Part shown: piece by piece, positions 582-40,349 of the stretch
How positions within the stretch are numbered: the stretch's first letter is position 1
Layout: every line of letters begins with the position of its first letter
From: Orbicella franksi
Lineage: Eukaryota
DNA length: 64,000 bases
Direction of reading: 5' to 3'
Assembly (NCBI GenBank): GCA_964199315.1
Contig: OZ116698.1
Coordinates: 23,994,001-24,058,000 of the forward strand
Translations under genes and position numbers: made by a program
The notes under the pieces: generated by a model
The model's database searches: none
What the model was told of the DNA's origin: nothing
Seen by the model: the letters and a program-made list of their open reading frames with translations, nothing else

Positions 582-3500
582 AGCAGCTGCAGTTTCCCAA
601 TCTAAATCTTTGGTCAAAATATCAAATAAATTAATTACCATTTCCATTTGTTGGAGCTGTGCATCATTGTGATGATGGGGAATGTGCTTAATTAGTGGAT
701 GAACCATCCAAACATTCAGTTCTGTACTTGGGATCAAAATGTCTGGATCATGCAAAAGATGGCATTAGCTAGCATTGCTTTTATTTTATTATCTTCTTCC
801 TCTTCCAGGTCACATCATGTGCCCCATCCTTTAATAATACTAATACTGTAACATCTTAGTTGTAATGTTTTACTTTACAATTTACCTAGTATTGAAAGCC
901 CTGTACATAAAATCGCTTGCATATTTATGCCATTGTGTCTTTGATATTCTTGAACTGCAGAGGCCCAGCATCTCACTGCTGCTGCTGTACTTATCTTTGT
1001 TACAGACTGTCTCTAACACCACATCTGCTAAATTATATGACACTATGGTGAGTTTGCTTTGTGTAGAGTATTGTGTAGATCATTTATTAGCCTGCCATAT
1101 CTTTATTTGAAACTATTATACTGAAGTATTATGCATGTAAGTGAGGGATGAACCATGATAAGGAGAGTATCTAAGATGTATTCTTTATGCCCTTACTGGA
1201 GGTGACAAACATGGTGTTCTTGTGTGCATGTACACATACACTGTAGTTATTGCGAACATTTCAAGGATGGTCAAAACTGGAATAGCTTAAGGTCATTCCA
1301 CTGTAATAGAACCTACGCTTAGATTTTTACCAAACTTCTCCCGCTTGTCTCTCAATATATGTAAAATACAACTAGTGAGACAATCTCAGATAGTGCAGAG
1401 CGCAATTGATAGCTCTGGTACAGTAGTCCCATAAGTACTCACCCCTACTCGGTTCACTTCCGGTTTGTGTCTATCTTGGTAGTCTGCTACGGCTTTTCCC
1501 CTTTGCAGTGTGTATGTTTCAAGGTTGTATTTTCATTCAAGGTCCAAACATTACGCACAAATTAATTACTACTGGTGCTTTAAGTTGATTTTCGTTCATT
1601 TTAAATTCAACAATACGCTGAAGCAGCAAACGTGACAATTTAGCTCTTCACGCCAACTTTGTAACTTGATACTTTTGTTTTCCTCGCAAAGCCATGTAAT
1701 ATGAAACCCCTGTTTTCTCCAAAACATACGGATGTCCTTGTTTTTTGGAGATAAATGAAAGAAAGTTAAATATCTGATGTAGTGATGAAGAAACGGAACA
1801 GAGACGATGTTTTACTAAAAATGCAAATTTTTACCGATGAACAAGAACTAATTTAATTATCAGATAGTCACGAAATACCACTTTCTTTTTCTGTTGCCAC
1901 CTTTGTTGTTAACAATAAAACAATTCAAAATTAACACACAACGATATTGATGGCTGAGAAGCTTTTCAACGAAAAGTATTGAAGATAAACAGCGCTACTT
2001 GGCCGATATGAATGAGTCTCCTCACAGACTGATTAAATTAATTTGCGCTTTCATTAGGTGCCACGGCGTCTGCAGCAATATTTGAGCATTTTTCTGGTTT
2101 CTTTTGTTACAAATTCACAATTTGCGGAGTATTAACGCCACTAACTTGAGAACTTTTTGGTCTCTCTTACAGACACAATTAAGGCAAGAAATAAACAAGT
2201 CGCTAAGGAGAAGCAATATATTTGAACTCTGACAAGCACACTATTGTAGATTGAAAACAGCAGATGATATCTGTTGAACCGACCTGTTTGTAATTCTAAA
2301 AGCTACGCAGCCACAGTAACGTTTCACTTTTGCAATAAAAAGGGACAACTGGCGCTACCTGAAAAATAACTGCCGTCCTTGGTCACATGACACGATATAT
2401 AAAATACTGCGTGTAAAGATAGTGTATAACACTAACAATGCTAGAACGCATGCGTCTTACATGTTGAGCTCTACCATAAGGAAAACCACTCAACATTTGT
2501 GCGTGATTCCGTATGCAATGTATCCTTCACCTAATATAGAAGCCACGAACCCTAACTAATCTACGCATGCGTTTAGGGCAAATTAGTTTTGTTCTAAGGA
2601 GAATGGTACCACAAGGAGAGCAAGGGGTTACCTGAAACAAATATATAGCTTTGCGATGTTCAAAGTTAAGCGACGGCGATGGAATGTGTTTTACGTAGAG
2701 TACACATGTACCTTTCCCACCCTACTCCCACTACTTCCCTGCCTCTAGACTAATTAATTAATTGAAATTAATTAATTAAACAAACATTAAAGTTTACACC
2801 TTAGCGCCATAGCGCCATAGCGCCTTAGTTCCTTAGCGGCAGGCAACCCCCATAACCATCCCAATAGTGCACTCTGCACTAAAAATGAGATAAAAAAGGG
2901 GGGTGCCCATGCTAACGTCTTAGATATTGTGGGTGTAAATACCCCTCTCTAGGGCTGGTTTGTGTCAATTTTACCTAATTATTAAAATTGTAACTTCCTC
3001 ATTTGCAAAGCCAAAATACACTTGAGGGATGCAAGGAAAAGTGAAAAAAGGCGTGAAGAGTTGTCTGTGATATTGAGAATATTTCCCTCTGTGTCTCACT
3101 GGCGTAAAAGTTTCTTAAGGTTGCCTTTTTGTGCATCAAAGTGGTTGCTATGGTTACCATATCACAAGAAACAATGCACTTTTTGTTACTTTCTGTATTA
3201 TTTTTTCATATTTGTAACACTGAGAATTTGTTCATTTTTTCTCTGCAAAGAGTTTAAAGGAAGTTTTATTAATTAACAACAAAGAATTGTGGGGTCCCCA
3301 TGCTCGTTTTTGAATTCAGCAAGAGATTAGATGATATTTTGGTACCCTTCAAAAATTGTATAATTTTTGATACTAGAAATGTTTTTACAACACTGGTCAT
3401 TACAGTGTATACCACACAAAAATATTTACGAACCATCTATTATAAACTATGCAAGGAATTGTGCATTCTTGTAGAAATAGAGGTGTTGGTTGCCATGGCA

Positions 3501-5370: not shown

Positions 5371-6341
5371 GAAACTTTATTTGGTCTGTTTTTTAATAAA
5401 CAGACCAACTGCCTGTAATGATGAGATTTTTTATTAACTGATGAGCAGTTTGTGAAAAAAAATGCAAGTTGGTCTTTGGCCATGTACATAAATCCAGGAT
5501 CCTGGGAGGGCAAACAAGTTCCTAATTAATGGCTGAAGGTCAGTACGGTACAGTATGTGGGAACCCAGGACTTAGGGAAGTAAAAATACCACACTTGGGA
5601 TCCCAGACGATAATTATTTGTAAATCCTCAATTGTACATGATTGTACAGCAAACACATGAATTACATTAACAATGAAGTCACATGCACGTAATTATATTA
5701 TTTGACATACAGTATATAAACCAGCAGACCTGTATCTGATAGAACATTACTTACCTCTTGAGGAGGTCTCCAGGTCAATAACTACTCTGTTCAAATCGCT
5801 GCCTGAAGAAATTTTTCTTCTTTCTGTCAGTGTCATAGGAGGGGGATTTCACCCTGGACATGTGGGGATTCTTTCCTAAATCCCAAACCACTCTCATACT
5901 GTTTGCCCTCTCATTTGAGCTTCTCCGTTCCTGTCTCTTCTCTGCTTCTTAAACTCTCTGCTCTTTGATAGGCAGACTAAGTCTAGACATCTTCCTGTCT
6001 ACTCTATCTGCATAGGTTTTACTATTACTTCCTGGTGATAGCAGTATTTTCTGCAGTGCCTAATATGGCATTTGATGTTGAAAAGAAATCATAATCACTA
6101 GTGGTATCTGCATATCTATCTTGGCACAAAACAACCAAGGGATCAATTATCAGAAACAAGGGAAGGTAATCGTAGTTCTCAGATGTAAATTAAAACTTAG
6201 TAAAAAGTGCCTTTACTCCCATCCCCTCTCAGGTCCTAATGGCAATAATATTCACATACTTTTCAGGTAGATATATGGGAGAAGTCAAGGGAGATATGCT
6301 GCTTTTATCCCCTTTCTGACTTGAAATTCTTTTAGAACCTC

Positions 6342-6571
6342 TATTTAAGAAAAAGAGGACTTTTCCCATGTTTACATAGCCTCATCTAAACATCAGGGGA
6401 GTTGGAGGAATTGAAGACAGTTGTGCAAACCCTGGTTATACAAACTCGAGATGCAGTCAAGGGTTTGCATAATTTTTGAGAATTCTCCTAGCTCCAAGTA
6501 TCTACATGAGGCACAAGTGTTAGATCAGGCTATGTAAACATGAAAAAGTCCTCTTTTGTTTTTATAAAATA
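6342..6571. mobile_element. MITE in a transposase intron
   Basis: Inverted repeats aaaagaggacttttcccatgtttacatagcctcatctaaaca (6351-) and tgttagatcaggctatgtaaacatgaaaaagtcctctttt (-6557). Confidence 0.7.
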
Positions 6572-13128: not shown

Positions 13129-16100
13129 CTGGATAATAAACAAATAAATGTGTGAAATAGAACGTAAACAAGCAAACGGTTGATCGTGGATGGTACTACT
13201 TGAGGAGACAATCATGTATCGGCCAAAGATGATCGAATTATCAATTCTGAAGTGTATGTTTTGGAGGTGGTTTAAAAATCACCCAAGTATATTACAATCG
13301 AATTTTCGCTCGAAGGACAATTAAATGCGTATATTTAATCAATCCTTGTTATCTTCTTCCCTTTGCTATGTACGTTATTACTCGCTTTAAACTATGTCCC
13401 ACTGTTTTATCAACATTTAATGGTTCTTTTGTAATAAACGTTCAGATTTTTAGCTAACCTATCTTGAATTCAAGTTTATGTTGCTTGTTACATGTCCTTT
13501 CAAGTGTATGGGCTTATCACTTATCACGGGCTTTCAAAGCAAATTATGAATAAATAAGATAAAAGAAATAAATAAACAAGCAAACAAACAAATAAATAAA
13601 TATAAAGGATATTCCTTTAACGGGGGTCCGCTTAATAGAGGTTTCACTGTATACATTACTGCGTAACTGAAAATTCCTCAAATCACCGAGAGAAATTGTC
13701 TTCCTGAGTCGATGAAAACGGGCACTCGTGGAGTCATAGGACGAAAATGAAAATAATGAGTAAAAGGGGAAATCAAAGATCAAAGATCCTATCAGTCATG
13801 ACTCGAAGTGAATACCAGCAATTGAATAGCGTTAAAAAATAACAAAAAAAAGCCCGGAGAACTTATACTTACAGTGAGGTATCTCGGTTTCCTGACGTCG
13901 ACGCTTTGTGGCTGTTCTGAAAACAGTACAAGAGAGCGCTGTTTATCTAACTCATTTCAGTGACGTTAGTGCTATTTATGTCATGTTTTCTGTCACAAGA
14001 CCAATCATGTGCACTGCTATATTGGTCTTGATACTCAATTAAAGGTATTCAATCAATCTTTAATTCTTTCATTTATCATTTGAGGGTAATGAAACAAGAA
14101 GGTGTTAAAGTTGTACTCCATGTAGACCAAGTAAAAAATCCGTTTAATTTACTTAGAATTCGATAGTACTTATGTAGGACTGAACTATACTTGACTCAAA
14201 GTCTGTGCTACATTGGGAGGAATAAATGCACGAACGGCAACCCTAAGCATAACGTAAGACATGATGATCCCTATTCTGACTTTTTTTAATACCTTTTTGG
14301 TTTACCTATCCAACACAGTGACGATAGGCTTCAATAACAATCGGAAGTCTACCCCTCGAATTATGTGAAGGGTACAATTAGAACGCCACCGGAATTTTAG
14401 TCAATTATTGTGATATTGCCAGAAATAGTTGTATCAACCAATGCTTCGCCCAAGTTTTCTTTTTAGGTTGACGGTATCAGCCTACGTGTTTATGAACGTT
14501 TTTTTGCACCCGTCCTTAAATGTCAATAGCTGAATATAGCTTCAAAGATTTTTTTACTGAAACAAGAGAAAAAATCCTCAACAACGACCTATTTTTATCT
14601 ACCACCAGATTCTCGTAGGTAACATTAAACTATCTGTATGCAAGTATGCAGGAACAATACTCGACGTAGTGGTTAATATGGTTCACGACCCTAACACGAA
14701 AAACATAAAAACACATACTTTTTAGTTGACTTTTTATATCTGTTGATGCCACAGGAGGCTGCAAAAAGTACTATTACTGAAGCTGCGCACGCGCTAATTG
14801 TAGTTATAATCCACGTGCTTTGATCTGCTCTCAGATTGGACGCAATCAAGATCTTTGAGGTGGTTTTGTCATCAGACGCTAGTAAAGCCCCACCCGTGGG
14901 ATTTTCCAGTTGAATCCAGACCACACTTGCCGGCGCCTGTCTTCTGTCATTGCCCACATTCAAAATGAAAGAGCTATTCCACTGACCATCTGTCATGGAT
15001 ACGTTTCCAGATGCTGGCCATATAAATTCCAGGTTATCTGAGGAGTCATTTTGGTACAGGGACCATTCCACGGTGATATCACCTAGAGAACCTTTAGATC
15101 TCAGAACGGGGATCTCCAGTGTGGTAACTTGCATCCTGCGAAAGACCTCAATGTGTCCATTCGAACTGTAAACTACACAGAAACAGAATATAATGTTAAT
15201 GCTGTCAGAAAACATCATTATTGAATTTTTTTTCCAAGGAATGATTTTCTTCTCATAATTGTTCATGACTTCCTTATATTATAGTTTTGTATCTTAATTT
15301 GTTGTATTTCGTGGTGAAACAGTGTTAAAATTTAGATAGTAATGCAAGGAATTTGTTTCCAGGGAACAGGGGAACAAAGGGAGGCACTTTTAATAGAAGA
15401 TTAGGAAACGCAGAGATGCCCGATGACTTTCCAAGAAAAAATTAAAGTGGAAAAATTCAAAGTTATAGATGGAATTGACGCAATGCTTTGTATAGACTTT
15501 CTAAAAGTCCTTTCCAATAATTCTTCCCTGAGCTGTTGGTTTCGCCGTTGGAAAGGACTTTTCCCACTGGCAGCGCGCCAAATTTTACCGGTGGATTTTT
15601 CCACCGGTGACGTAAATACACATTAGCCAATGAACAAACAAGTACTAACTATACGTCATGACATCGCGCGCGATCAACGACACAACTCGCAGAGCAAAAT
15701 TAGTGTCTGCTGAGTTGAAGTACTATAAAAATCTTTTTCGTTTAGCTTTTGTTCTCGGATATACTTACTGATATGAATTTTATGGAAGCAATTGAATATG
15801 GGCTATCCAACTTATTTCGAGTCTTTGAAAGAAGGGCAGGGAAAAGCAGTGGAAGGCTATCTATCCGCCCAATACGTGTTTGTTTACTTACGGACGCGAT
15901 CTGAGCTCCTGCGCGATCCGATTAAGTTTGGACCTCTCCAAGAAGAACAGAGCCGTTCTTGCGGTTTGCGAATGACCAAGTTTCTTCTCTACAAAGCAAG
16001 GGCATCGCAGCAAATTTGCATCGGCCGTTTTAACGACTTTACCGTGTTGAAAGCACTCGTCGATCGATGAAGGACTTTTGGGAACAGCGCTTTTATTCTC

Positions 16101-19100
16101 TGCCGTTCGTTGCGACTTCGATTCTCAATGTTATTTAATTAAGAGAGCTTTACAGAATAAAAGTTCTCCCCGACTAATTCCGTCTTCTTTAGTTAATTCG
16201 GATTCTTGTCGGTACAAGCTAGATCTACATAAGTTCATAGCATTTGTCTGGCAGCTCTCTGATCGACTAAAATAATTCCAGATCGGTTTAAACACGGTTT
16301 TGTCTTTTCAGGAGGCGTTAATCAATGGAACAGCTTTTGCCGTTTGTCTGCTGGCTACATACTGCACTGTACACAAATAAATTCATTTGAGTCAGGGAAC
16401 AGTACTCGTAAACGTTTTGATGGAAATCATTTTCTGCTTTCGCGACGATCGCGCGCGGAGCACATGAAAAGTGAGAAATGTCAATCATGTTTTTCGCGCC
16501 AAAAATTTACGCTCTGATTCACATTCCTGCAAGTGAAACAAGTCGACCTCTCGCGACTTACGTGGCTCGCGCCCGCCCTCGCGACTTCGTCGCATTACCG
16601 CTTCACCCGAGGGAGATAAATAAGTCAAGGATTAAGAAAAGGTCGACTTGTGGCAAGTTTATGCTTTGTACACCTAATTATAAAAAATGCTAAAAGTTTT
16701 CGAATCCAGGTTGAGTCAACATATTTACACTACCAATAAATCTTTTTTTTTCAGTTAACAACGTAAATGATAGTCAAAATCTTTTATATTACTTAGAACC
16801 TACTCGAGTGACTCTTGTCAAACAGAATCAAGCCATTCTTTGCATAGAAGGAGAAGAAAAATGAAAATTGAGTCAGGTGACAAACATGCACTTCCAGAAG
16901 TTTCATCGAGCGGTTCACGTGACTCCAAGGCTCTGGACAAGTCAGGGCTGCGTCAAACCTAGAATGAAAGAAGAAACGATGAATCAACTTGTACTGAGCT
17001 TATATAACACTGAGCAAAATTTTTGCTGGTTTTTGGGTTGTATGGTTTTTGATGCCAATTTCTCCTTTTTCTTCTTCCTTGCAACGCGTCAAGCTCTAAA
17101 GTTCCGAAACCGATATGAGCAGGTCGCTTTGTCGTCCATACTTAGCTAACTTGGAGGTAAAAACCAGCAGCTTTCGCCCCTTAGTTCTCAATCGAATTCT
17201 GGATTACACCGAGTAGCATACACAGCAACGACAGCGCCTGAAAATTTTATAACGAATGGCGCGGTTTGTGTTAACGCAAAATTGTGTGAAATTTCAGCTT
17301 GTAAAGCTTCGATTATAGCGCTCAGTTCAAAGCAGCAGGAAAAAAAGATATTTACCAAGTCTCGTTATCCGGATCCCACAAATACAGCACAGGGTCTATG
17401 TCTTCCTTGGTAACTTCTTTACTGACGTGCTCTTTGTTCGCTTCAATCAAGTTATTGACGTCATAGAACATAGAGAGTTTGATTGGCTTAACAAACTTAA
17501 ATCCCTCTTGTACAGTGTTGGTCTGAGGATCCAAGGCCTTGATGACAAAACTGTAGTTACCAAGCATGAATTGCTGTTGGGTTGTAAAAGTAAAATACCT
17601 TCATTAAAGGTACAATTTACAGGTTGTATGGGGAAACAGTAACAATGAGCCTCTGAAGCCGAAAAAAGGTGCAATTTGCTGCCTTGTGATTGATAAAAAA
17701 GTAACAGAAAATTTAAAATTCCGTTTGTTTTTTCCCTGGGCAAGATCGCTTGCATTCGTTTTATTGGGTCGAGATTGGAAACCATGCCCACCGTTACGAA
17801 ATTCAATATGTGATGTTCTTGAATCTGCTTATAGGAGAACGATAAATTGGTGCGCAGATTGCGAATTATTATGCCTTCAAGTCAAAGGAAACCTCGATAT
17901 AACATCAAAACTTTAGGCTCGAGAACCAATGATGAATGAAGAGAAGTGAGACCGAGGGAAAACTGATTAATATCAATATACATATTCTTCCTACTGGTAC
18001 ATAATACGTTTGTCCAACTAATCGTTGGAACAATTGTTCTTTCTTAAGTGTTACTTTGTCTGATCAGTTGGTTTGTTCTCATAACCTGCAACTTGACTTT
18101 GTGTTGATATGGGAGAAGAAATTCCACGTGGATCATCGTAAACAATTCGTTTAAACGAAATAAAAAACAAGATCATCCTCACACGGGCAAAATGTACCAT
18201 TTTCGTTGCCCCTTAAACTCGGTTTGCCTTAATGTAAAATATAAACGTCCTAGTGAAAAAGGGTGTCAAACGAACCTTTGGTTTTGTCTTGGAAGGATTA
18301 CTGACAGGACCCTCCTCGGTTTTGTTTTCGTCTAACGCTTTTTCATCCAAGCTATAACATCGCAACTTCACTTCATCCTCAACAGCTCCTTTAGGGACAT
18401 CCAGTGTTCCGTACGTCTGCCCAACGCCTCCATCCTTGCGTGTTCCATTGTCGTTCACGTTAACAGTATCGAAGAAAAACGACGCTTTTGATGAATTGTC
18501 AAAGACATACTCGGACTTCCCGACAACAATTCCGTCGGAGGATAGCCAATCCGATAGTAAACCAGCCCCATTTATTGCTCGTACGGTTGCGAAGTATTTT
18601 TTTCCTTTTTCTAGTGTCCCTTCCTTTACCTTAGCACGCCATATAGTTGTATTGATAACCTCTTCAAAGTCTGATACGTCGACCAGACCAGGTCCACTTC
18701 CCCACGCCACCTCATATGACGTCACACCACTGTCTGGATCGCTCCCAGAAAAGTAGGCAAAAATAATGTCAACAAACACCTGTCAAAAACGAGAGATGAA
18801 TCTTTATGGTACGGCATGTAATTGAATTTATGATCAGGGTTGATCGTGCACGCGTCCGTAGAGATCTTGCGTAACTCGTAAAAGGGGAACTGAGTGGAAA
18901 AGTACAGTATTCATTTAGTCCGTCTTAACACTTAAGTTTCGAGGAACATGTTTCAACAACCTCCACTGGCTTCGGCAGTTAGGAGAAAAAGATACAACGT
19001 ACGATATGAATTATGACCTATGTAGACGGAGAGTAAACTTAGTAGAGGTTGTCGAAACATAACTTTCCTTGAAACTTAAAAGGTTTTTTTTTCTAAAAAT

Positions 19101-22100
19101 ATTTACGTGCAGAAGAAATTCCACATCTAAATGCTGCTTGAGGCACAGGACTACCCACGCTTTTATACCTGATAGTCCATGTCTGGTCCCATGACTCCAT
19201 CTCTCACATATGTCATGACAGGCGGTGTAGTATCTATGATAACACCATCACTGTGAGCAGCTGAACACATTCGGGCTCCATTGCAGGCAATAACTGTGAT
19301 GTAATAGGAATCTCCATGTTTCAAACTAAGTCCATAGTGACTTCCATTTGGCCTCATTCCTGTGCTCTCGCATACCCGAATGTCGTCTGTCATTGGCTTC
19401 CTGCCCACACACCAGAAATACTCCACAATGTCGCTCTCATTATCCAGAAAATCAATCCACCTGGCATGGACCTCTCGCGTGTTATTCGTAAACTTCACAT
19501 CCGTGGCCTCAAAATTACGAGTAGAACACTGGCTGTTTTCCCCAAATGTTGAGTTATCGGAGCAATTCACGTTTTGGTCACTGCCAAGTCCATCGTATAT
19601 CACTCCAGGCACGGGAGCTGTCGAGTCGATCACAAATGATCCTGATAACGAGCTCGTTGATTTACCAGCTCGGGTGGTTTCGAGTAGTTCGACAGTGTAG
19701 ACGTGCTCGGATCCAGCGACGAACAACGATCCATTTGATAACTGAACATTGATTCCATTTGTTGTGTTGCTTAAATGTAAGGTCGAAACACAAGATGTGT
19801 CATCGCAGATACCTGACTTGAAACTGGAGGACTCATTAATTTGAGGCGAGAAGCAAATCCTCCCGTCGCAAACTGAACAAGTTTCCGAAAAGCCTCCAAA
19901 TGATTTCCTTCCTTCCTCACAAGGTTGACAAGATATGGGACGTAAGCTTCGGACGTTATAAACTCTGGTACGGAAGTGGTTTGGCGGACAGTATGTTGCC
20001 ATAAAAACTCTTCCGGTGCTTGACCATTGATGAGTGTTAGGCCACGTAAGGACGTCAGGTATCCCGAATAAGATAGTGTTTCCTTTGAAGGACACAGATG
20101 TTCGAGTCTCCATGCCATCAACTCGTAACGCGCTTCCTCTGGCAAGTACTGATCCTAGATTGACACATTCAGTAATTCCTTTCCTCACGTCGGGATCTTT
20201 AGAGTAAATTCCTTGGAAGCCAAGCAGTTGGACTCCTTCACCACCATTTAATGCTTCAATTCCGAGGGCAACAATAAATCCTTCCCCTCGAGTGTTTACA
20301 TCAAGATTCCCACTCAGTTCATCAATATCTCTCCCAGCCTTGTACTCACACACATCATGATAAGAATTTGAAGAGATGTTAATCTGAAACACTTTTAGTA
20401 ATCGAGATGTCTCGGACAATACCACAAGAGCGTCCGTGTCAGTAAGGTGTAAAGACAGAGGTGCCATTTGGTTTACAGAGTCGGCTGGACATATTGTTTT
20501 ACGGACTACAAGGGCTGGTAGTGAGTATATAAACACGCAGCAGTTTTTCCCATGTCCAGCCGAAATCGCCAGAGTACGGTCGTTCAAAGATATTGAGTGT
20601 CCAAAGTTTGGATCGTTCAAATCCTCGCCAATTACCTGAGTAAACTTCCATTTTCCAGAATCCTCTCGAAAAACGGCAACAACGCTGTTGTTGGTGGTTA
20701 AATTCGTTCCAGTCACTGCAATTACGTTCTGATTGAGGGCAAATGCTTGTCCAAGGTTATCTGCCCATGCTTCATCATCAGAGCAGTCTGACGCTGAAAC
20801 GCTTTTACATTTTCCAACCACGATGGCCTCGCTTAATATGCTTTCACTAGGCTCACCAACAGTAAGGTTATAGAGATAGAGTTTACCATTCAATAGAAAG
20901 CCTGTTCTGTTTTCACTGGAAGATATCTTTACTCTTGCATTAGGATCAGAGTGGTCATCAAGCACAATAGAGTAACTTGCAGTTTGATTCTTCAGAGGCT
21001 GTAGAACCACTTTACCTTTACATCCAATAGCTACAACGTCATTTTGCAAAACCGCAACGGAAACTCCATAGTCTTCGACTGGTAAAGTCGACTTGAAGTG
21101 TGTGTCACTTAAGGCAGATAGTGCATTGTTAGGCGTTCTTGCACAGCACGCACCTTCCGCGTCCGCAAAACCAGGGATTGCCTTCATTGTTGTGGACTGG
21201 GATGTCATGTTTGTGTCATTATTTCCACTTGTCACTCTTTTAACGATTATTTTAAATTCGGCAGTTGGGCTAAACATATTGTGTTCGAGTAAAAACTTTG
21301 TTCTGTCAAATGTTTGGTTTGAGGCATCACTGTTAACGGTGAGTTCTAACTCCGCTGGAGAAGAGATGAAGGTCATATCGGTATCTACTGTACTCTCGCT
21401 GACTGGTGGAATCCTCAGGTTTGGTAACCAGCGTAAGTGTTCATTTTCAGCGGCTTTGTCGCGGATTGCAAGACCACGGGTTGGTGGAGGACTCGGTTCC
21501 ATTTTTAACCCATCGCTGCAGGCCTCGGAGTAGATTCCTCCCTTGTTCCACACCCTCACAATGCCACGGTAACGTTCCCACGGATGAAAGGTTCTTCTTA
21601 TTGTTACGTTGCGTTGCCACGGCAACACGTCCATGAAGGGTTGCTCAAGAGACTCTCCATTCCAAGACGTATCCTGAAGAATTCGTGGTACAGAAAGATT
21701 AGAGGAGAGTTTCGTGACTGCTACCTGAACACGCAGGCGTGAAACGTCGTCAAGATAACTGCCAATAACGTTCCACCTCAGTGTCAAACTTTGCAAATTC
21801 GCCTTCCAGTCGATATCTGTGAAATTGCTTGTATTAAAGCTTGAAATGTCAATCACTTCGGCCAGCTTCGGTGCTATAGTAATTATTGTGCATGGATCTG
21901 ATACTATTCGCCTTCTTAGTTTCGCTCCGTTCTCGGCATACACGGTGGAAAATAGTTTTGTTCCTAGGCGAAGTCTGTTGACGATAGCAGCGCCTCGCGT
22001 TCTCATTCCCACCGACCTCATAGACACCACGTCACATGAAGCCTTTGCTGTTCCAACACACCAGTCATACTTCACCATTCCACTCTCTTGGTCTTCATAT

Positions 22101-25100
22101 TCTTCCCAACGGGATGTTAAGTATTCTTCGGAGCAAATGAAAGTGATGGGAGAGCTAGTTTGATTCTCTTTTAATGATTTGAGATTTGAGATGGAAACAT
22201 TTACATTTGTTAGGGTTGAATTTGAACGTGTCAAAGAAGACAAATAGTCATCATTCTTTGGAGTCGGTAGGGTCAAATCGATCAATACTCCATCACTTGT
22301 CATCTCCGTTGACTGTCCAATTCTATTTGTACCACGAACGATAGCGTAGTAAGTTTTGTCATGCGTAAGGTTAAGGCCATCGATTGTGTAGCTTCTGTTC
22401 AATTGTACGTCAACGAAGGTGGTGACAGTACAGTTTTGGAGAGCAGAAGTCAGACAAATTTCATATTTAACGATGCCACTCTCGAAGTCCATGAAAGGAG
22501 TCCAACTGCAAGAATTAATGAGTAAATATAATTAAATATAATTGTTTTAACTAGTAGAAGCAACTTCTTTTAGATGATCACTTTATTGCTCTCCCAGGGT
22601 TGAAAAAATAACAAACAATTCAAGCTAATTTATAGACAAGTAGAACTGGAGCAGGAGTTATCATCAGAGTGAAGTGAAAAGTGCCCATCAGCCAAACGTT
22701 TTCTAAATCTGATCTCATGTTAGTGTAACCGTAATGTATTTGGCGGTAAGACTCGTGTAAAGTTTGTCCGCAGTGACTGTTCAGTTCTTGTAAATTTCGA
22801 TCTGCGTATTGATAGTCAGTTAAGTCATTCTATTTGAGGTCTGATCGTCCGTTTAGGTTGGGAATAAGTGGATAGTTGCTGACATCTAGTGGGAGGCGTT
22901 TATGCCAAGTTTGTGTACCCACTTCCTGGAGTCAGTCGTTGAACAAAGTTTTAAGTTTAGATTAATATTTGATCAGAGTCTGAGTCAATGCTGTGGTTTG
23001 TAGGTTGATAATGTTCTGTTATGTGATCATGAATTGACATTGCTATTTCCCTTCGCTCGTTTGTGTTCTCAGGTAGTCTCGTGTACTCCCTATCTGTTTT
23101 TATTGGTTAGTAAATTACGAAACGTGTCATGTGGGCTATAGGATCCGCGCGCTGGTCTAGAAAGTGTCATCTATTTTGACCTTTTCTAGATATCACAAAA
23201 CTTTGAAAATAGTATTCTGCCGGGGATTCTCCATACTTACACACGGACGCTATTAACTACACTCGCATTCATACGATTACTTATGCTAATTAGAGCAAAA
23301 TACAGCAGTTTATATGACAATTCCGTTCGAGGAAATTGCAATGGTTTTTGATTAAGGGACTAAACGTGCTGGTGATCGGTTTTGAAACTATTACCGATTA
23401 CTTGCTGAATTGTGCTCCATTCATTCAAATCACTATCACATATGCTATTATGTTACCTTACGACCACTTTGGCAGAATCTGACTGATAGCTGACGTGCAT
23501 GTTTCTAGCACCAATCCATACTTTGCCTTCCGTCGGAGGAGTAAAATCGACCGTGAATCCATCAGAGAATACTTCCAAAGTAATACCGGCGTAGTTTTTG
23601 GCCCTCACGATAAACCTGTATTGCTCGCCACTCTCAAGATCCAAACCTGCAGAAAACAAAGTCTTTTTTATTGGAAGTACGTTTAACTATGACTTGCATT
23701 TCAAACTTGAGCAGAAAAATGTGCACAATAACAATCACAAAGCTGAATAGAGGATGATGTGGCAATCACGCTGAAGGTTAAATCAAAGCCGGTTACTCGT
23801 CATCAGTTTAATCTCACCTGTTATTGTCACATTAGTGACTTGTCCCACTGCAGTGAAGGTTTGAGGACAGGAAGACAGGTTTCTAGCATCACATAAAGCG
23901 ACTTCGTAAGACTCGATACCAGATTCCAAGTCCAGAAAATCTAACCAACGTGCAGTGATATCATCTTCACTATTCACATAATCTACATCTGACACCATTC
24001 CATCTATCACACTACCGGAAATGGGAGGGCTTTCATCGACTATCACTCCATCTGACGTTAGTGATGTTGTTACACCTGCTCCGTTGGTTGCTTTGACCGT
24101 GACATAATGGCGCTGGCCATTTGCGATCGCCTTGTTAAGCACATAACGGACAAAGGTGCCATTATGATCAATTTGCGTTTCATTCACGAGATCACAAGTG
24201 CCTAAAGACAAACCCGCACACCAAGTGACTTTAATGACTCCACTTTCAAGGTCTTCAAAGGCACTCCAGTAAGCTGTAATGAGGGTTCTGCTCTGTTGAA
24301 CATCAATGTCCTCGCCTTCTTTATTTCCATCTATTATTGTACCATCATTGGTAGGTCCTAAAAATATGGAAAACAAACGTAATGTAAACGTAGTTCTAAG
24401 ACCTAAAAATCTCTTCACCGGAGGGCAAATAAAGTTCAATATTGACCAGGGACGACATCTTGGCCCTCAACGATCTTCGGCTAAGATGATCCGGTAATAT
24501 ACTCCACCGGAAGTTCACTTTAAACGGACTCTGTTTCTATTGTCTCAGTGTTTGTATGCATGATTGGTCAAATAAAGTCACCTTGATCTTAAATTATTTA
24601 ACTCAATGCCAGCAGTACATATCACAACCTAAAAAGGAAGCATCGTTAATTTACCCGTCCTCGGATCTCTTAATGAGGTAGTCCAAGCAAGAGTATATTT
24701 AACATGGTTACTTATTTTTTCCAAGCAGTAACAACACCTCGGGGCAGTGGAAATGGACTGGAATACATTTAGTAGCTGCCCAATAAAAAAAGAATCACGA
24801 ATATCGATTTGTACCTGTCTTGTCGACAACAATCCCGTCAGACGTTTTCACTTCACTTGCTAAGCCTGCTCCGTTTTCTGCCTTAACAGAAACAAAGTAC
24901 GTTTCTCCTTGAATGAGCGGTAAATCTTGGAAAGTGAAAGTAGTGGAGTTACTCATGTCAGTAAAGTTCTTGATGTTACAATCTCCTGGCTGTGTTCCAA
25001 CACAAACGTAGGAAGTACGAACACTGCTCTCTTTGTCCCAGAAGCCATTCCACTGAACTGCAATTTGGGACTGTGTGAAATGCTCTGCAGCCTCCTTCAT

Positions 25101-28100
25101 GATTGGGTTTGTGCTCTCAAGGAAATTTATCTCACCCAAAAAGGGAGGCGTTGAGTCAAGCACGAAGCCATCTGAATAGAGTTCTGCGAACAGGCCAACG
25201 TTGTTTTCCACCCGAATTTTCGTCACATACCTTAGTCCTTCTTTGAATTCCAGGTCAGCCAAACAGATAAATGTTTGGTTTCCTACGTCCAAATTATACA
25301 GTACACATTCACGAGTGTCCGTTTCAGAGCAGACGGAGACCTCGCTTTTGAGCACACCACTCTCAGAATCTATGCTATCCCAACTAACACAGTACCTGTC
25401 TTTAGCTGTGAGGTATTCAATCTTTTTATCACCTAGGCCAAGCTGCAAGTCCAGAACCTATCCGAATAAAGCGTATATATAATTTAATCAAATGAAAGAA
25501 ACGTTTCTATTTACACAACATTAGCGTATATTAAAGCAATTGTTGCAACTCCGAAACGTTTTGCTCGATTCTATATTTAATTTCTTATGCACCCCAAATC
25601 GTAGAAAACAAATTCAATATACATGTAATATTAAGTACATCATATTTTAGTAAAACTTGCAGTGCAAACCCAGGGTAGCGTGGTGATCTATTTCAAGAAA
25701 GTTTGAGCAAGTTGTCTAAAGGACGTTTGTCTACTACATCATTCATACGCAACTAAGCCGCTTTTTGTTTAAAAAGGGTAACAAAACTTTTTGAGTATCA
25801 AAGGGTTAAACTGGATCCTAAACGTGCCGAAAGAAATATAAAGATAGCGATGTGAAGAGGAAGTGGACTACAGTGGGCTCACCTTTGAGAGAATCGGTGG
25901 AGTGTCGTCAACTCTAAATCCGTCTGAGGATACTGTTGTATATTGGCCTGCGTTGTTCAAGGTGCTGACAGTAATAAATATTGATATTCCTCCAGGTAGT
26001 GGTGGCAGAATCTGTTGACTGGCACTGGTGCGATCGCCAACGCTGGTTTCGGATATGATATCGCAGATACCCTTTCCTGTGCCAGCACACCAAGTATAGC
26101 CTCTAACATCTGATTCTTCATCCTGGAACTCATCCCAGTTGGCAGAAATGACCGTGTCAGCTGCTTGGTAATCAATGTCCAGGAGTGTCTGACCATCTCT
26201 TACCTTTCCTCCTAAAGGTGACGTACTGTCAACTCTGACACCATTAGAGGTTGCCGTTGTGCTGTAACCGGACTCACTCGTTGCACGTACGGTAACAAAG
26301 TACCTTCCATTGTGCTTTAAGCTTAATCCTGTTATGGACCCTTTAAAGTCCATGCCAAGACTTACAAATCCACTCACATCACATGTCCCTGCTTCTGTTC
26401 CTGCACACATCTCGTAGTCAGCAATGCGGCTATTAGCACATTGGAACGGGGACCAGTTGGCTGAGAGTCGAGTAGTAAAGCTTTGAAATTCTCTATCTGT
26501 CTGTCGCTCCAATCCATCGTACACAGTCCCCGGAGATGGGTTAGCTCCATCCAGCATAAACTGGTTAGAAGTAGCTTCACTGAATAAGCCAACCTTATTA
26601 AACGCACGGACAATTATGACATACGATATGCCATACTTGATACCAAAAGCGTCAATATTTGTAGCAGTATTAAGGCCAACGTTCACATATTCATTAATAC
26701 ATTTGTCTGTTTCGCTCGTTTGACAAATGGCCCATTCAAAATGGCTTAAACGACTCTCGTTATCCACAAACCCACTCCATTTAGCTGTAATTGAATCTCT
26801 TTTTTTAAAATAGGTGGTTTCTGCAGTTTTTCTTAAGGTCACATTTCCAACTGACGGAGGGGTGGTATCAATTAAAAGCGGTCGGGCGACGACCGTGGAA
26901 GTAATTCCAGCACCATTTGTCACAACAAGCATCACATACACTACAGTACCAGAGGCTAGCGGTGGAGACATGTAATGCTTTACCGAAGTATCTCCCGGAT
27001 CAACTGAGGTCAGCGAGACGATATCACAGGAGTTGTTCTTTGTTCCCGCGCACCATTTAACAGACCAAATTCTGCTTTCCGTGTCATAGGGCTTATTCCA
27101 ATAGAATTCTAAATATCTACCATCATTTTGAATGATGAATTGGGGCACGCTATCTTCTTCATTTTCAACACTGTGGTAAACCCCTTCCATTGTAGGTGGC
27201 GAGTTGTCGACGGTTATACCATCAGAGTAGATTGCATCTTTAAGACCAGCACCATTGGTTGCCTCGACTGTAAAAAAATACTGTAAGCCTTCTTGAAGAT
27301 TAACCCAGTGATAAACGCTTGTTCGAAGGTCAACAGATGTCATGTTTTTTACTTCACAGGTTCCTGAAAAATAACACAAAACTTAAATATTCTATGTATA
27401 TACTCCAACTCCTAACAAAGAAGTCAAACATAAACAGCTGCATCGGTACGTTGTAAATGGAATGGCTCGTCCAAGCATAACTTTGGGATGACCAGGACTT
27501 AAAAAAAGAGGTGCACCAAAGAGAAGTCATGGTTACCTTGGGCTATTCCAACACACCACTGATATTCTATAACATCGCTTTCAGAATCTTCAAACCCACT
27601 CCAGTGCGCAAACAACATCCCGCTATCTTTTTGGTGATCACTGTCGATAAACACCCCCGTCATTGGCATTGTCCGATTACCATCCAAAATTTCCCCTGCT
27701 TCAGGGGGCGTCCAGTCCACTACTACTTGCTTTGATGTTAGAACGGTTTCCAGACCTACCATGTTGACGCCAGTAACGGTCACGTAGAAAATTAAGCCTT
27801 GATACAGCGTGAAATTTACTTGGCCTAAATCAAGGGAACGGCTTAGACTCTCGAGGCGTTGACTGGCTAACAGGTCACTTTTAAATGGAAAGCTGCCGAC
27901 GTGAACGATGAAGTGGCTTATTCCGCTTTCGGGATCATCAATTGACCAGGTAACTACAGGAGCAGACGGTGATGTTAAGAACAAAGTTTCTTCACCCGAT
28001 GATGGCGAGATCTGGATTGATTTTGCAACTGGAGGTGTTCGGTCTATAATTACACCATCCGAGGATGACATTACAGTATCACCCCTAACGTTTTCAGCCT

Positions 28101-31100
28101 TTACTGTCACGTAATATTTCTTTCCATGCAAAAGAGTCAGGTTATGAAGGCGACTAGCTTTGGTTTTTAAATGGTGCACTTCTATGAATGGCCATGCGCA
28201 CGCGTCTAATCCAGATGCATTGGGTGGCAGATCTCTAATGCACCAATCGTATCTTGAGATACTAAATGTAGGATCCTTAAAACCACGCCAGTGTGCCCAA
28301 ATAGCTCTATCATCGAGCTGGAAGTCAATGTCATTTTCTGACGAGAACGGTCCGTCGCTTACAACACCAGCAGATAGTTTTCCTAATATTACAAGCATTC
28401 CTGGCGAGCAATCTGTTCTGTGAAGCCCAGCACCATTCGTAACTCGGACAGAAACAAAATAAGTTTCGTTTTCCATAAGGGTTTGATTCTCGATGATAAC
28501 TCCGCCAACAGAGTCATCAGCTACTACTTCAGTGTATAAATTGTCGCCATCTTGTTTCAGTTTTTGGCAGTCTGTTCCAATTGCCCAGCTGGTCTTCTTG
28601 ATACCACTTTCAGGATCTGTAAATCCTGTCCAAGTGACAACAAAAGAGGAATTGGACAGCTTATTGCTGCTTTGATCATAACTGCGTGGGAATACATGAT
28701 GGGCAGCTACAATCCCAGGGCTTGGCGCTGAACGATCAATGATAATGGTATTTGAGGAGGATTTGCTAGACAGGCCACCTTTATTAACCGCAAAAATATT
28801 TAAAAAACACGTACTGCCCTGCTGGAACGAAACGCTTGATATTGATATGTTAGTTACTGATGGCGAAACGTCGGAAAAGTTCTTGATGTCATTCGTTCCT
28901 GGAGTTGTTCCAAGTCCCCAGGACACTGACTTCACGCCACTTTCTCTGTCGCTTACTGACCATTCAACTTTTAAGAGATCCCTCTCTGGATCAAATGCGA
29001 GCTTTAGATTACTCACTTCAGGAGGTGTATTATCAATTGTAACACCATCTGTCCATTTAATTGACTTCAAGCCAACAGCGTTCGCAACCTCAATTCCAGA
29101 TTGGTAAGTGTGTCCTTCAATAAAGCGTGCTGTCATTCGACCTCCGCCTGTAATTACTGCGGATCCAGTTAGGTTCACACGCGTCTTCAAAGTGTAAAAC
29201 GGAATGGCGGACTCCTTTGTTTGCATATCTCTGACCGAAAACTGATACCGAACTATTGGAGATTCGTTGTCATGGCAAACCCAAGAAATAATGAATCTGT
29301 TTGAGCTCGGAGCATATTCAATGTCATTTGGATAGTTACTTTTGCCATCCCAGACCTGGGAGCATATTGGAGGAGTAGTATCAACAGCAAATCCATCTGA
29401 TTGTATGGTAGCTTCTAGGCCGATGCTGTTCACTGCTGTTACGTTGACATAATAAGTTTTTCCGCTTGCAAGTTCTTTTGATAGCTCCAAAGTTAAACTA
29501 GTAACATTCCCACGAACCCTGAAGGAATCATGCATATCCAGCGAGGTGTTGCGGGAACTCCTTCCCCATACTTTAAGTCTGTATACCTGAATGCCACTTT
29601 CAGCATCAACAAACTTAAAAATAACAAACAAAGTCCTATTTGCAGTCTGATAGTCACCATCCCGAACATAAGTTGGATTAGGGGGCGTATCGTCGTATAC
29701 GATTCCATCGGAATAAGAGGCTGTTGTAAGGCCAGCTTTGTTAGTGCATCGAACAGTACTAAAGTAGCGAGCACCCAAACGAAGCTTTCGATTGGTTATA
29801 AAAGAGGTTTGGGACACTGGTAGGCTGGTGAAATTTACAATGTCTGCATCACCTGGCTGTAGACCAAAAGCGATAGCAATGGCGGAGAGGCCGCTCTCTG
29901 GATCCTCGCACTTCCATGTTGCTTTCAGGGAATTTTCCGATGTATAGCTTAACTCATTATCGGGATCATCACCATCACGACCTGGTTGTGAAAAAAACGG
30001 AGGACTGAAATCTACCAGTACGCCATTGGATGTAGCCATAAAGCTGGGCATCCCGAGTATGTTGTAGGCAATCACTGATGCATAGTAAACTTGACCAGAC
30101 TTCAGCTCCGAAACTTTCAGTCTAGAGCTTGTGGCGGTGTTTACCATCCCCACGTTTGTGAATCCTTGCACGTCTTGGCCACCTGGGAAAGAACCAAACG
30201 CCAGATGATATGACACGATGCTTGTTTCATGTTCTGTAAAGTTACCCCATGAAGCTGTAAGAACGGAGCTCTCCATTTGTGTGCCTATCTCCTGCCCTGG
30301 TCTTCCATTAGAAACATAACCTGGATGAGGAGGGGTTGTGTCTACCAGCACACCATTGGAATGAAAGAATTTGGAATTCCCAGCTCTATCCTCCAACTTA
30401 AGACATGCGTAGTACGTCTGTCCCGAGATTAACGCTAGTCCGGATAAAACATAGAAGTTTGTGTCACTTGAAACGATTACCTCTTTCCTCGCATCACAGA
30501 AAGTCGACCTCGATTTGCTAGACAACCCAAGGTACACTTTGTCGATTCCTGAGAAATCAGTAAAACCATACCAGTGCGCACGGTAGACGGAGGCAAAGCT
30601 CTGATACCTGGCATCCTGTAAGTCCCAGCCATCTAATACTATCCCATCTTGAGGTACGTCAAAATCAGAGACCAGAGCGGGGGAAGATTTAACAGTGGGG
30701 AGGCCAGCGCTGTTTAAAGCTAATACGGTGATGAAATAACGCCTGTTGTTTTCCAGAAATGTTGGTGTCAGCGATGTCCAGTTAGCTCGCAATGATGATG
30801 TCGGAAAACGTAAAGAGAAGGACTGGAATTTAATGATGTCATCACCGCCGGAATAACTTCCAACGCCAATTTTGTAAGCTTTCACCCGGGAAAGTTCGTC
30901 TTCAACCATAAAGTAAGATCGAAATGTTACGACAGAAGCGTTTACATATTCCAACGTTTCGCCAAAATGGCCATGCTGCACCAGAGTTATTAAAGGAGGA
31001 CTGCTATCAACAATAAACGTGTTTGACAGACCACGGGAAGCAACACCTGCTTTGTCGCTGGCTTCAATAGCAACCGAGTAGAGCCCATCTTTAAGATTAA

Positions 31101-34100
31101 TGTTACGGCCAGCGTATCTTTGGCGTCCAGCTAACTTGAATGGGGCGAGAAGCTGCTCAGTAGTTTGCGATACCACAGAAATACTAAACATACCAATTCC
31201 ACTGTGAACATCAAAAAAGCTGTCGTTGCCACACTGATTATTGTTCTTTAAAACTGCAGATGCTCTCTTCTCATCCGCCAAGCACCAATTCCATCTTGCC
31301 CATACTGACGTAGTTATCCACTGGTACAAGATTGGTGGACCTGCCAATCCGGTGAAAACTTTTCCAGAATGCGGAGGGACAAAGTCTACAATAGCACCAT
31401 CGCTGCTTGCGTTGATACACATACCCACTCTGTTACAACCAATCACAGTCACGAAGTAACGCCGACCACTTTCGAGGAGGATTCCTGTTATTGTCTCATT
31501 GGTCTCCGAGCCCACCGAACTGAAAGCTTTAATGTCAGCAAGTCCAGATTTAGTACCAAGCCCCACACGATATTCCACCAGCCCACTTTCTGCATCAGAA
31601 AAAGCTTGCTCCCAGTGCGCACTATAAGAAAAGCGGTCATTAGTATAGTTCTTGTCTATTTCTCCTTGTCCATCTTTGATGTATAGTGGTGCAACCGTTG
31701 GTGGTGTCATATCAATTAAAATGCCATCCGAGGAGATAGTTTTCTTCAGACCCGCTCCATTAATGATCTTTATGGTAACATGGTATCGAAACTTTACGAA
31801 AATGTTAATGTCAGGAAGTTGAACATAAAAAATACCATCCATTATGGTTTGTGGCAGAAGGTCGAGTTTTTCAAAGGCTCGAATGTCATCTCCACCAGGG
31901 TAAGTCCCGACACCTACAAGCTGTGAACGAATGGTACTTTCACGATCTGAACATTTCCATTTTGCTTGGATACTTTTTAATTCTCTCACGAAGTCTACGT
32001 CTGACGTGTCCTTTTCATCAGAGACGTCAATCACGCGTCCTTCACAATACGGTGGTGTATTATCAGGTATAAATCCATTTGTCTCGATGACCGCTTGAAG
32101 ACCGGCAGCGTTAGTTCCACGAAGGGTAATCCTATAAGGAGAGCCCGCCTCAAGAGAAAGGCCATCAATGAGGGGTGTCGTTTGGGTGACAGGTACATTG
32201 ACAAAAGCTGTGACTTCTTCACCAGACATATTTCTCACAATTTTCCATTCATACTTGGTAATCGGACTTTCACGATCAATAAAACGATCAAACTTTGCAC
32301 GGACACGTCGTATTGATGGAAGAAAGCTCGCGTCAACTTCACCAGCACCGTCTTGAACATATGTTGGTATGGGCTGAGTTATGTCAATTAAGATACCGTC
32401 GCTGCACATAACCGCTTTTAATCCAAACTTATTCATTGCATACAAGCGAGTGAAGTACGTTTTTCCGTGTTCAAGATTTAAACCACTAACTTGAATAGAG
32501 TTAGAATTTCCAAGAGATTTCAGAGGAACCACGTCTGCTTCTAACGCATCAAACGTACAAGCTGGGTTTGAAGAAACTCCCCATTTGATCTGGACAATTT
32601 CATTTGAATCACTTTTAAATGCGAAGTTCATTCCTAAAGTGTAATTATCGGACTGATAGTCAGCATCTTTTCCTTTTACTACGCCATCATAAACATAACG
32701 AATTTGTGGTCCTTTTCTCCTCGCGGGAAACGACGGACAATTTGCCAAGGAACTGTCGAGTCCTTCTTCGTTTGTCGCCATAACACTGACAAATACATCT
32801 CTACCGTCCATGACCGCGAGGTTTGTGACAACCTTGCTAAGCGATGTACCCACCCAAGAAGAGTAGTCATCACCTGAGCCTTCTATAGATCCTATCCTGA
32901 CTTGATAAGCACCAATTTTTGAGTCTTCCTTAAATCCATGCCACTCTACAAAGTATTTGGTGTCTGCCACCTGCCGAGCTACACACGTTCCCGCTTTCGG
33001 AGGCGTGCTGTCTTTTTCTTCCTTGCAACTCGTGAAAAGGACTTGGTTGATTTGTTTTGTTGTCCACGACCACTCCTTAAAAGTGTTCATTGAGCCCCAG
33101 TAGAATTCTATATCACACCCAATTAACCAACAATCAATGCTTATTTTCATAAACCTGTACCAAAGATAAACTCTGATGCTCAAAGGGGTCAAGCGAATTC
33201 TCAGTTCGATGCATGCTTTTAAAGGCCAGCTGCCAAACGATATACGCAACTCCGGAATAAGGTAAATTTCCAGCAGCCTGGCTTCAATTGTAACTCCAGC
33301 TTCAATAACATAAAGAGGAACGCTAGCACTAGCGTATACAGAGATCCACGCCCCGGGAATCAAACCTGAAGTAAAGAGATTCTTTTTTAAACAAAGTGTT
33401 GCCTGGTAACCTATACTATAATGACCAGCAGCACCTGCAACAAACACAACATATATTCCAAACACTGGAAAACCTGTTGTATATCGATAAAATTCACGGG
33501 AACCTCGCAATAACGTTCCTCTGTGAGAAAATTCACAGGAACCTAAACCTGTAGCACTTCTTTGCACTCTTTTTCGGTGAATCTTTTCAAGTTGCTCATG
33601 GTAGACATCTGTTTCCAGGAGCTCCTGAGAGATACTTCGTTTGCGTTTTGTTCCACACATGTGATCTCCGATTGGAAAGAGCGTCCGCGGTCTAACAACG
33701 TCGTAGTTCCTTACTTTAAAGTAAATACAGTTCTCTTTTATACCAAAGGTGGTATTGAGAATCGGCAGCCTTATTTTAAAGTATCTGTCTTCAAAGTCGC
33801 CACCAAGTAGTTCGAAATTTTCTTTTTCAGCAAACGTACCACTGGAGAATGCCAATAAAATAACTTCATTATCAACTCTGTTGACAGATTCTAATCCAGA
33901 GGGAGTTCGAACCACTCTTGCTAGGGTGTTTTCTCCCGTTTCGTCTCCATTATTCAAGTGATGAAATTCAAGCTTGCACTGAAACCCAGCAACCATTGCA
34001 CACCTTGAGATACACGCATAGTCGTTACCAAACTGCCTTATAATCGTCATCCCTTGAGCATTCTTTCCGATGTGAATTACTCTGTATGGGGCTAAACCAG

Positions 34101-39581: not shown

Positions 39582-40349
39582 CTGATGTTGAGAAGTGCAT
39601 TACATGTATATGTTATTTTCTATTTCTCATACTGGAGTACCAGTTAGATGTGTTGAAAATACACACTTCAGAGAGTTAAGTGGAAATTTTAGTGGAAGTT
39701 TAACCCCCCGGAAATTACAAAACTGCCGATTTTCTTTCCGGCGATCGGTGTAAATCGTCTGAGACAAAAAGCTCTCCGAAATGAAAACTGGTAATTTGGA
39801 ACTGGACAAACGAGTTCAACAGTATAAGCCTCCAGACGTGCTCAAAGGAGGGGGGAGTAGGCGTTAGAGGGGAAGATGGGCCTTTTCTTATCAATTGCCT
39901 AAAATTTGGACAAATGTATGCCCAAATAACCATCATTCGTTGCCGTCACCTTACTGTCGAACCTTTTTACGCAAACCCTGGTAAAGGATATATTTTCTGA
40001 AAGCTCAAGGATTGTAGATTACGAAGGAATATTCGATAAAATCAAACATTTTAGTGTTTTCCGATTACAGCGCCCGATTTCGTAAAGTAAAGAGGTTCAC
40101 TAATCAAGTTCGTTTCCTTTCGGATTTGAGCGGGAGGAAGCGATCAACTTCGCTATGTCTTCTTGACACCTTTCTCTAAAAAACTGTCGCGAAATTGTGA
40201 TCACTTCTCTGGTTTGTTATTGACACGTTATTTGTTATCGACACGCAAATTCGAGAGTTGATAAACATGCATTCTGTTCACTATAATAGTTATAACTAAT
40301 GAAAGAATCGTCCGACAAGGATGTGTTATGTCAGCGTTACTGTACAACA

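Follow-up and report, generated by a model that had tools for sequence, protein, structure and literature searches.

The minus strand of a 64-kb stretch of the Orbicella franksi genome (a coral, Scleractinia; the window below means this whole stretch of 64,000 nucleotides (nt)) carries a giant gene whose nearest annotated relatives are in Desmophyllum and Oculina. Three of its exons (18782-18276, 17573-17356 and 16958-16804) encode a domain of ~190 residues that ends in VCHLTQFSFFF, and the next exon (15172-14719) supplies a Calx-beta fold followed by one transmembrane (TM) helix. Here, we describe this ZU5-like domain, its unannotated family and its Cys-His-Leu-Thr (CHLT) motif, a candidate site of self-cleavage just outside the membrane. 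The features of the module, in window coordinates, are as follows.

18276..18782, minus strand: the last FN3-like repeat ends here and the ZU5-like domain begins, with its N-terminal third (open reading frame (ORF), RNA joint, and a weak Pfam fn3 match in the upstream part)
~18518, minus strand: start of the ZU5-like domain, KSEYVF (translation)
18410, minus strand: start of GTLDVPKGAV (translation)
17356..17573, minus strand: core of the ZU5-like sandwich, from QFMLGNYSF via FKFVKPIKL to LYLWDPDNETW, with its last codon split by the intron (RNA joints on both sides)
16804..16958, minus strand: C-terminal strands of the ZU5-like domain, the CHLT site and the last strand TQFSFFFSF (translation, RNA joints on both sides)
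within 16804..16958, minus strand: end of the ZU5-like domain at ~16844, and first strand of the Calx-beta-like domain from ~16837
16937..16939, minus strand: codon of the second invariant Cys (in LTCPEP), putative disulfide partner of the Cys before the His (C161 and C180, both invariant in family alignment A2)
16871..16882, minus strand: Cys-His-Leu-Thr codons (C 16882-16880, H 16879-16877, L 16876-16874, T 16873-16871)
16876-16874 / 16873-16871, minus strand: predicted scissile bond between Leu and Thr (conservation, position in the model)
14719..15172, minus strand: Calx-beta-fold domain (to ~14835) and single TM helix (~14819-14745)

The introns between the four exons (702, 397 and 1631 nt) are all canonical GT..AG, the spliced frame stays open across 444 residues, and the same junctions are read through in the annotated orthologues of Oculina, Montipora, Nematostella and Acropora. 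Two runs (X14 polyA and X1) gave RNA contigs that span all three joints, namely 18276/17573, 17356/16958 (which appears in the RNA listing as 17354/16956, an offset of +2) and 16804/15172, and a third run (X23, raw polyA reads) contains 18276/17573 only. RNA depth concentrates on the four exons and is low or absent over the two domain-internal introns, and the acceptor end at 18782 is likewise seen in RNA. An initial annotation, made from the DNA letters, had named three exons with quoted peptides here, and all of these were recovered at that place on the minus strand; it had also proposed one TM helix instead of a seven-pass (7TM) bundle, which agrees with the single helix found after the Calx-beta fold, and a Calx-beta domain, which stands as a fold but escapes the Pfam Calx-beta model (PF03160, no match in the window ORF and orthologues at E<=1 to 5, nor in any of 40 family members). 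Given the TM helix downstream of the module and the signal peptide at the start of the RefSeq orthologues, the product is a type I membrane protein with the module outside the cell.

A library-wide phmmer search using the orthologue domain alone (P0003:6158-6362) returned 148 cluster representatives at E<=1e-3, distributed among anthozoans, other eukaryote-type proteins and bacteria, the bacterial taxonomy being that of ESM Atlas labels only. Eukaryote-type members are very long proteins with FN3, PKD, TSP1 and EGF modules, and the bacterial ones join the domain to solute-binding, propeller, LRR-PKD or subtilase modules; a search of genome loci with a single bacterial domain gave 61 pattern matches and 0 confirmed ones, and a homologue search with the domain of one mid-length family member returned 2 matches. 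Matches stop at about query residue 190, straight after the strand that follows HLT. The motif CHLTQF is identical in seven anthozoan orthologues, though identity over the domain drops to 51%, and in an alignment of 40 sequences (A2, 22-35% identity outside anthozoans) only F90, F108, C161, C180 and H181 are invariant, with L182, T183 and F185 conserved at >=90%. Two of the invariant residues (F90, F108), together with the near-invariant G86, Y88, P111, P142, L144 and W154, are encoded by exon 17356..17573. CHL[T/S] occurs in 114 of the 120 library-wide copies that extend to the motif (CHLT 103, CHLS 11, CHFT 2, CHFS 1, CRLS 1, CQFS 1, CNLC 1), so that the residue at +1 is always a nucleophile (Thr, Ser or Cys). 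The CRLS and CQFS copies, which lack the His, are second, internal copies; the C-terminal copy of the same protein is intact in both cases. Since C161 and C180 are both invariant in A2 and the domain is extracellular, they probably form a disulfide.

One homologue differs at the site itself, and bacterial members end shortly after it. In a crinoid protein (P0071, XP_033121447.1, Anneissia japonica, residues ~2890-2990) the domain is intact up to the conserved Cys, and STH with a ~25-residue insert bearing RRRR, a furin-type site, replaces HLT ahead of the last hydrophobic strand; judged from this one predicted sequence, self-cleavage may have given way to a convertase cut in the same loop, a hint that what is kept is the cut at that loop. 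In eight bacterial members (P0192, P0194, P0201, P0203, P0207, P0212, P0217 and P0199; alignment A5) the domain forms the extreme C-terminus, and the chain ends ~10 residues past CHL[T/S]xFA with a conserved [Y/F]-L-P-x-x-x-[R/K] tail. If the bacterial domain cleaves, a peptide of ~25 residues would result.

An AF2 model from A2 (predicted local distance difference test (pLDDT) 83, predicted template modelling score (pTM) 0.79) is an 11-strand ZU5 beta-sandwich, which is beta from residue 1 and has only three short helices, all inside the sandwich. HLT (181-183) lies in a tight turn joining the last two strands (174-181 and 184-191), and the arrangement is that of GAIN subdomain B, a beta-sandwich with the site in the turn between its last two strands. 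Foldseek placed ZU5 (E 2.5e-5) ahead of GAIN (E 4e-3), and an exhaustive structural comparison scored ankyrin ZU5 highest (11.7, 11.1 and 11.1), followed by the GAIN domains of CD97 (9.1), BAI3 (8.9), GPR126 (8.2) and CELSR1 (8.1), then UNC5b ZU5 (6.8), the FIIND of CARD8 (6.6) and of NLRP1 (5.9), and Nup98 (4.0). Structural matches in AFDB Swiss-Prot included GPR56, Cirl, UNC5 and PIDD1; among AFDB clusters the best match was a bacterial solute-binding-like protein (E 4.7e-12, 22% identity) and the next were prokaryotic entries named 'ZU5 domain-containing'. The nearest ESM Atlas shape cluster was a Chloroflexota SBP_bac_5 family, and of the 100 Atlas clusters nearest in language-model features, 87 had no Pfam family, the first named one being ZU5.

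By indirect checks, the site of the coral domain also falls in register with known sites. By end-point arithmetic T183 lands on residue 531 of CD97, 383 of GPR56 and 864 of Nup98 and within one residue of 588 of PIDD1, which we take to be the cleavage-site positions (S531, T383, S864 and S588, respectively). The structural alignment to BAI3, which sets model residues 1..190 on 704..864, puts L182 on L856, the Leu named at its cleavage site (PMC3321182). With the A2 family profile as query and templates drawn from the O. franksi genome itself (its GPS exons and 15 ZU5 open frames), HHalign set HLT on HLT of the GPS exons (Prob 53.6, P 1.3e-4, a local match over 18 columns) and HLT on HFS of the ZU5 frames (Prob 56.6, P 1.1e-4, 121 columns), both below the usual 90%; the highest values in controls (20 column shuffles plus reversed templates) were 7.2 for GPS and 0.2 for ZU5. 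When the chain was predicted as two pieces, one ending at Leu and one starting at Thr, the score was 0.79 against 0.00 for the best of three controls. Solved complexes attain this mark in 51 of 78 cases and mismatched pairs in 2 of 108. The strand at 6340-6351 docked between 6239-6250 and 6296-6304, with contact agreement of >=94% between runs and a partner pLDDT of >=84.

Profile searches leave the family without a name. No Pfam family covers the domain in the three exon ORFs, the orthologue domain, the 40 family members or 10 whole homologues, no NCBIfam model matches it, and PDB sequence and profile searches gave chance-level matches only. Specifically, neither Pfam GPS (PF01825) nor Pfam ZU5 (PF00791) matched any of the 40 family members at E<=10, nor the locus or its paralogues; elsewhere in the O. 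franksi genome the same models matched at least 71 and at least 31 exons, respectively. The initial annotation was borne out on a ZU5/GAIN-like fold, in that the model matches both ZU5 and GAIN subdomain B by Foldseek and structural comparison, and on its proposed check of HLT in homologues, where the triad is kept far beyond corals in the 40 sequences of A2 and in 114 of 120 copies, but its match to the GPS motif fails, as the GPS model misses the domain and the Cys spacing is C-H-L-T with one Cys pair. Liao, Pei, Cheng and Grishin reportedly extended ZU5-like domains in 2014 to prokaryotes and to some extracellular proteins. Liao et al. 2014 (J Mol Biol 426:3935, cited in PMC11697300) proposed that GAIN-B, ZU5 and Nup98 are homologous, and the coral domain is best filed as a separate, unannotated family within that superfamily. 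The GPS-motif and ZU5 exons of O. franksi also form large tandem clusters, on contigs C8 (6.3-6.7, 19.6-20.0 and 26.9 Mb) and C11 (7.8-8.3 Mb), which points to expanded adhesion-GPCR/PKD-like and ZU5 gene families (GPCR, G-protein-coupled receptor) in this coral.

We favour cis-autoproteolysis of the coral domain at the Leu-Thr bond, giving a non-covalent two-fragment protein, and put its probability at roughly 0.6. Three things argue for it: the mechanism of GAIN cleavage, in which His serves as base and Thr as nucleophile, disulfides fix a strained turn and Leu sits in a pocket (PMC3321182); the position of the coral triad; and its extreme conservation with the nucleophile always at +1. By analogy, the proton of the Thr hydroxyl would be taken up by the invariant His during folding in the secretory pathway, and Thr would attack the Leu carbonyl in a strained turn held by the presumed C161-C180 disulfide. 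An N-to-O acyl shift followed by hydrolysis would then cut the chain between Leu and Thr, and the new N-terminal strand, TQFSFFFSF, would remain within the sandwich. The mature protein would be a lasting non-covalent pair of a ~6,300-residue FN3-like ectodomain and a ~300-residue stub consisting of the TQFSFFFSF strand, the Calx-beta fold, one TM helix and a tail bearing NPxY, from which the ectodomain might later be released by pulling out the strand. A dependence of such shedding on force, a Stachel-like role for the strand and signalling by the stub are suggested by analogy with other systems.

Several points weigh against self-cleavage. Many ZU5 domains do not cleave, the case for a cut at the triad consists of fold, position and conservation, and the fold models and the split-chain prediction were made on the Oculina orthologue, 78% identical to the window over the four exons. 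The register comes from alignment end-points and HHalign rather than from residue-level superposition, and likeness in sequence to GPS and ZU5 is weak (HHalign ~55%, missed by the Pfam models). The split-chain result makes strand complementation plausible in a model and would be expected of any two pieces of one fold, so that it says nothing on cleavage itself. The family has one conserved Cys pair, with C-H-L-T, where GPS has C-x-C-x-H-L-T and two disulfides. Finally, some GAIN domains are left uncut in certain cells: BAI3, with Arg for His in a GPS triad that is otherwise conserved, stayed uncleaved in insect and HEK293 cells (PMC3321182).

The main alternative is an uncleaved ZU5-like module, whose beta-sandwich would have a structural role or bind a ligand, like the ZU5 domains of ankyrin, ZO-1 and most UNC5 proteins, and in which CHLT would be kept for closing the last hairpin (the Cys in a disulfide, the Leu in the core) and not for catalysis; we hold this possible, though on the unlikely side. 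Non-cleaving ZU5 domains have lost the triad, whereas in the present family conservation outside the core is highest at His and at the Thr/Ser/Cys of +1, from bacteria to corals. The copies that do lack the His (CRLS, CQFS) are internal duplicates, and the furin-type RRRR insert of the crinoid protein at the same loop suggests that cutting there is kept.

It is far less probable that the module is a true GAIN domain acting as a tethered agonist (Stachel) on a partner receptor, as in adhesion GPCRs or polycystin-1. The window's CHLT does conform to the H-L-T/S/C triad of GAIN domains, but the helical subdomain A is absent, an FN3-like repeat standing upstream instead of it; a Calx-beta fold and a single helix follow the domain in place of a 7TM or eleven-pass (11TM) bundle; and the structural matches to ZU5 are stronger than those to GAIN. 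The coral domain thus departs from the GAIN domains of adhesion GPCRs and PKD1 (PMC3321182, PMC11697300) in lacking subdomain A, in having one Cys pair and not two, and in its single-pass context, and because of these differences and the missing Pfam GPS match we do not regard it as a GAIN domain. According to PMC11697300, PKD1-like proteins are the only other family known with GAIN domains. A chance motif or mis-joined exons without a real domain, for which only the shortness of the motif speaks, can be dismissed, as the RNA joints, the orthologue protein models, the 148 homologues, the confident fold and the identity of CHLTQF in orthologues and paralogues (with CHL[T/S] in nearly all copies) refute it.

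Comparison with known systems places self-cleavage of the coral domain in context. ZU5 domains are known from ankyrin, UNC5, the self-cleaving PIDD1 and the FIIND of NLRP1 and CARD8; their triad is HFS, whereas that of the coral family is HL[T/S] preceded by Cys, and the coral domain differs further in being extracellular, in its conserved Cys pair, in having no UPA or death domain after it and in its lack of a Pfam ZU5 match. The SEA domains of mucins are self-cleaving juxtamembrane modules, cut at G/SVVV, and the proposed outcome here is similar, with a very large ectodomain bound non-covalently to a short stub in the membrane and separable under force; fold and motif are unrelated, however, and the likeness is functional only. 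In FRAS1/FREM and ADGRV1, likewise, a giant protein of adhesion type has a Calx-beta fold close to the membrane, but the coral protein has a single, Pfam-undetected Calx-beta copy, no CSPG repeats and an FN3-like ectodomain; the likeness seen is that of the domain folds. FREM proteins are said to have been listed by Liao et al. in 2014 with a divergent extracellular ZU5-like domain.

The remainder of the gene and its copies comprise the following features.

19163..39600, minus strand: upstream exons of the giant gene, a 4033-aa exon and then open frames of 503, 217, 218 and 1109 aa (ORF list, Pfam)
39600-27499, minus strand: the 4033-aa open exon
G000:C1:23806324-23807653 and 23941122-23942553, strand opposite to the window copy: paralogous modules (loci L001, L003, L005, L006, L008, L009)

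The product of the upstream exons has a helical N-terminal region, followed by dozens of divergent FN3-like repeats in which a D-x-E-S-G-I/V-x-x-Y motif recurs; these parts would make up the fragment that is shed. The whole protein has ~6,700-6,900 aa; annotated orthologues in Oculina, Montipora, Acropora and Nematostella run to 6,300-6,900 aa, and full-length ones to 6,600-6,900 aa. Across orthologues P0003, P0053 and P0227-P0229, the N-terminal ~2,000 residues match weakly to HEAT_2, to apolipoprotein-like helical families and, in several orthologues, to Vitellogenin_N. Relative to the RefSeq orthologue, the window ORF begins near residue 152, which places the 5' exons and signal peptide beyond 39600. 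Between FN3-like repeats, the 1109-aa exon (19163-22492, minus strand) combines a weak FG-GAP_2 match with a Cys-rich stretch and is possibly a beta-propeller or integrin-alpha-like insert of the ectodomain. The two further copies of the three-exon module, both with CHLTQF, lie ~70 kb and ~205 kb away, so that the cluster holds three paralogous giant genes, as it does in Oculina patagonica (three annotated proteins on one contig). Within the 1631-nt intron, RNA depth at 15493-15530 and 16608-16662 is well above its surroundings, with many reads passing into unrelated sequence and joints of ~1086 nt with foreign letters between; these stretches look like the ends of a dispersed repeat transcribed elsewhere, and a repeat search in this intron found no clear local inverted or direct repeat and left them unexplained.

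The superfamily and its chemistry are already known. In our literature searches, which did not extend to the family lists of Liao et al. 2014, we found no account of a C-H-L-T/S site of the GPS type on a stand-alone ZU5 scaffold, nor of the use of such a domain close to the membrane of a giant single-pass protein in cnidarians; searches by orthologue accession numbers returned nothing, and those by ZU5-like plus Calx-beta returned nothing relevant. According to PMC11697300, GPS-type juxtamembrane self-cleavage at HL/T is confined to adhesion GPCRs and PKD1-like proteins, and the coral domain presents a simpler, stand-alone ZU5-type sandwich with the same triad in a single-pass protein. As such, it is a naturally occurring minimal system in which to study what self-cleavage requires of the sandwich by itself, and a candidate link between ZU5 and GAIN-B. 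The family, which numbers well over a hundred sequence clusters, is covered by no Pfam or NCBIfam model; its members are now annotated as 'hypothetical', and it merits a profile of its own.

More speculatively, and with low confidence, the family may be an ancient one that joins a ZU5 scaffold to CHL[T/S] and extends from Chloroflexota-type bacterial surface proteins to eukaryote-type proteins and cnidarians, perhaps close to the ancestor of GAIN-B. Its anthozoan members might then form a third class of self-cleaved two-part receptors after adhesion GPCRs and polycystins, in which load would release the ~6,300-residue FN3 ectodomain and expose a stub (hydrophobic strand, Calx-beta fold and NPxY tail) to be endocytosed or to signal. 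For corals and their relatives, the finding suggests, in a form open to testing, how one of the largest cnidarian surface proteins could be shed or gated mechanically.
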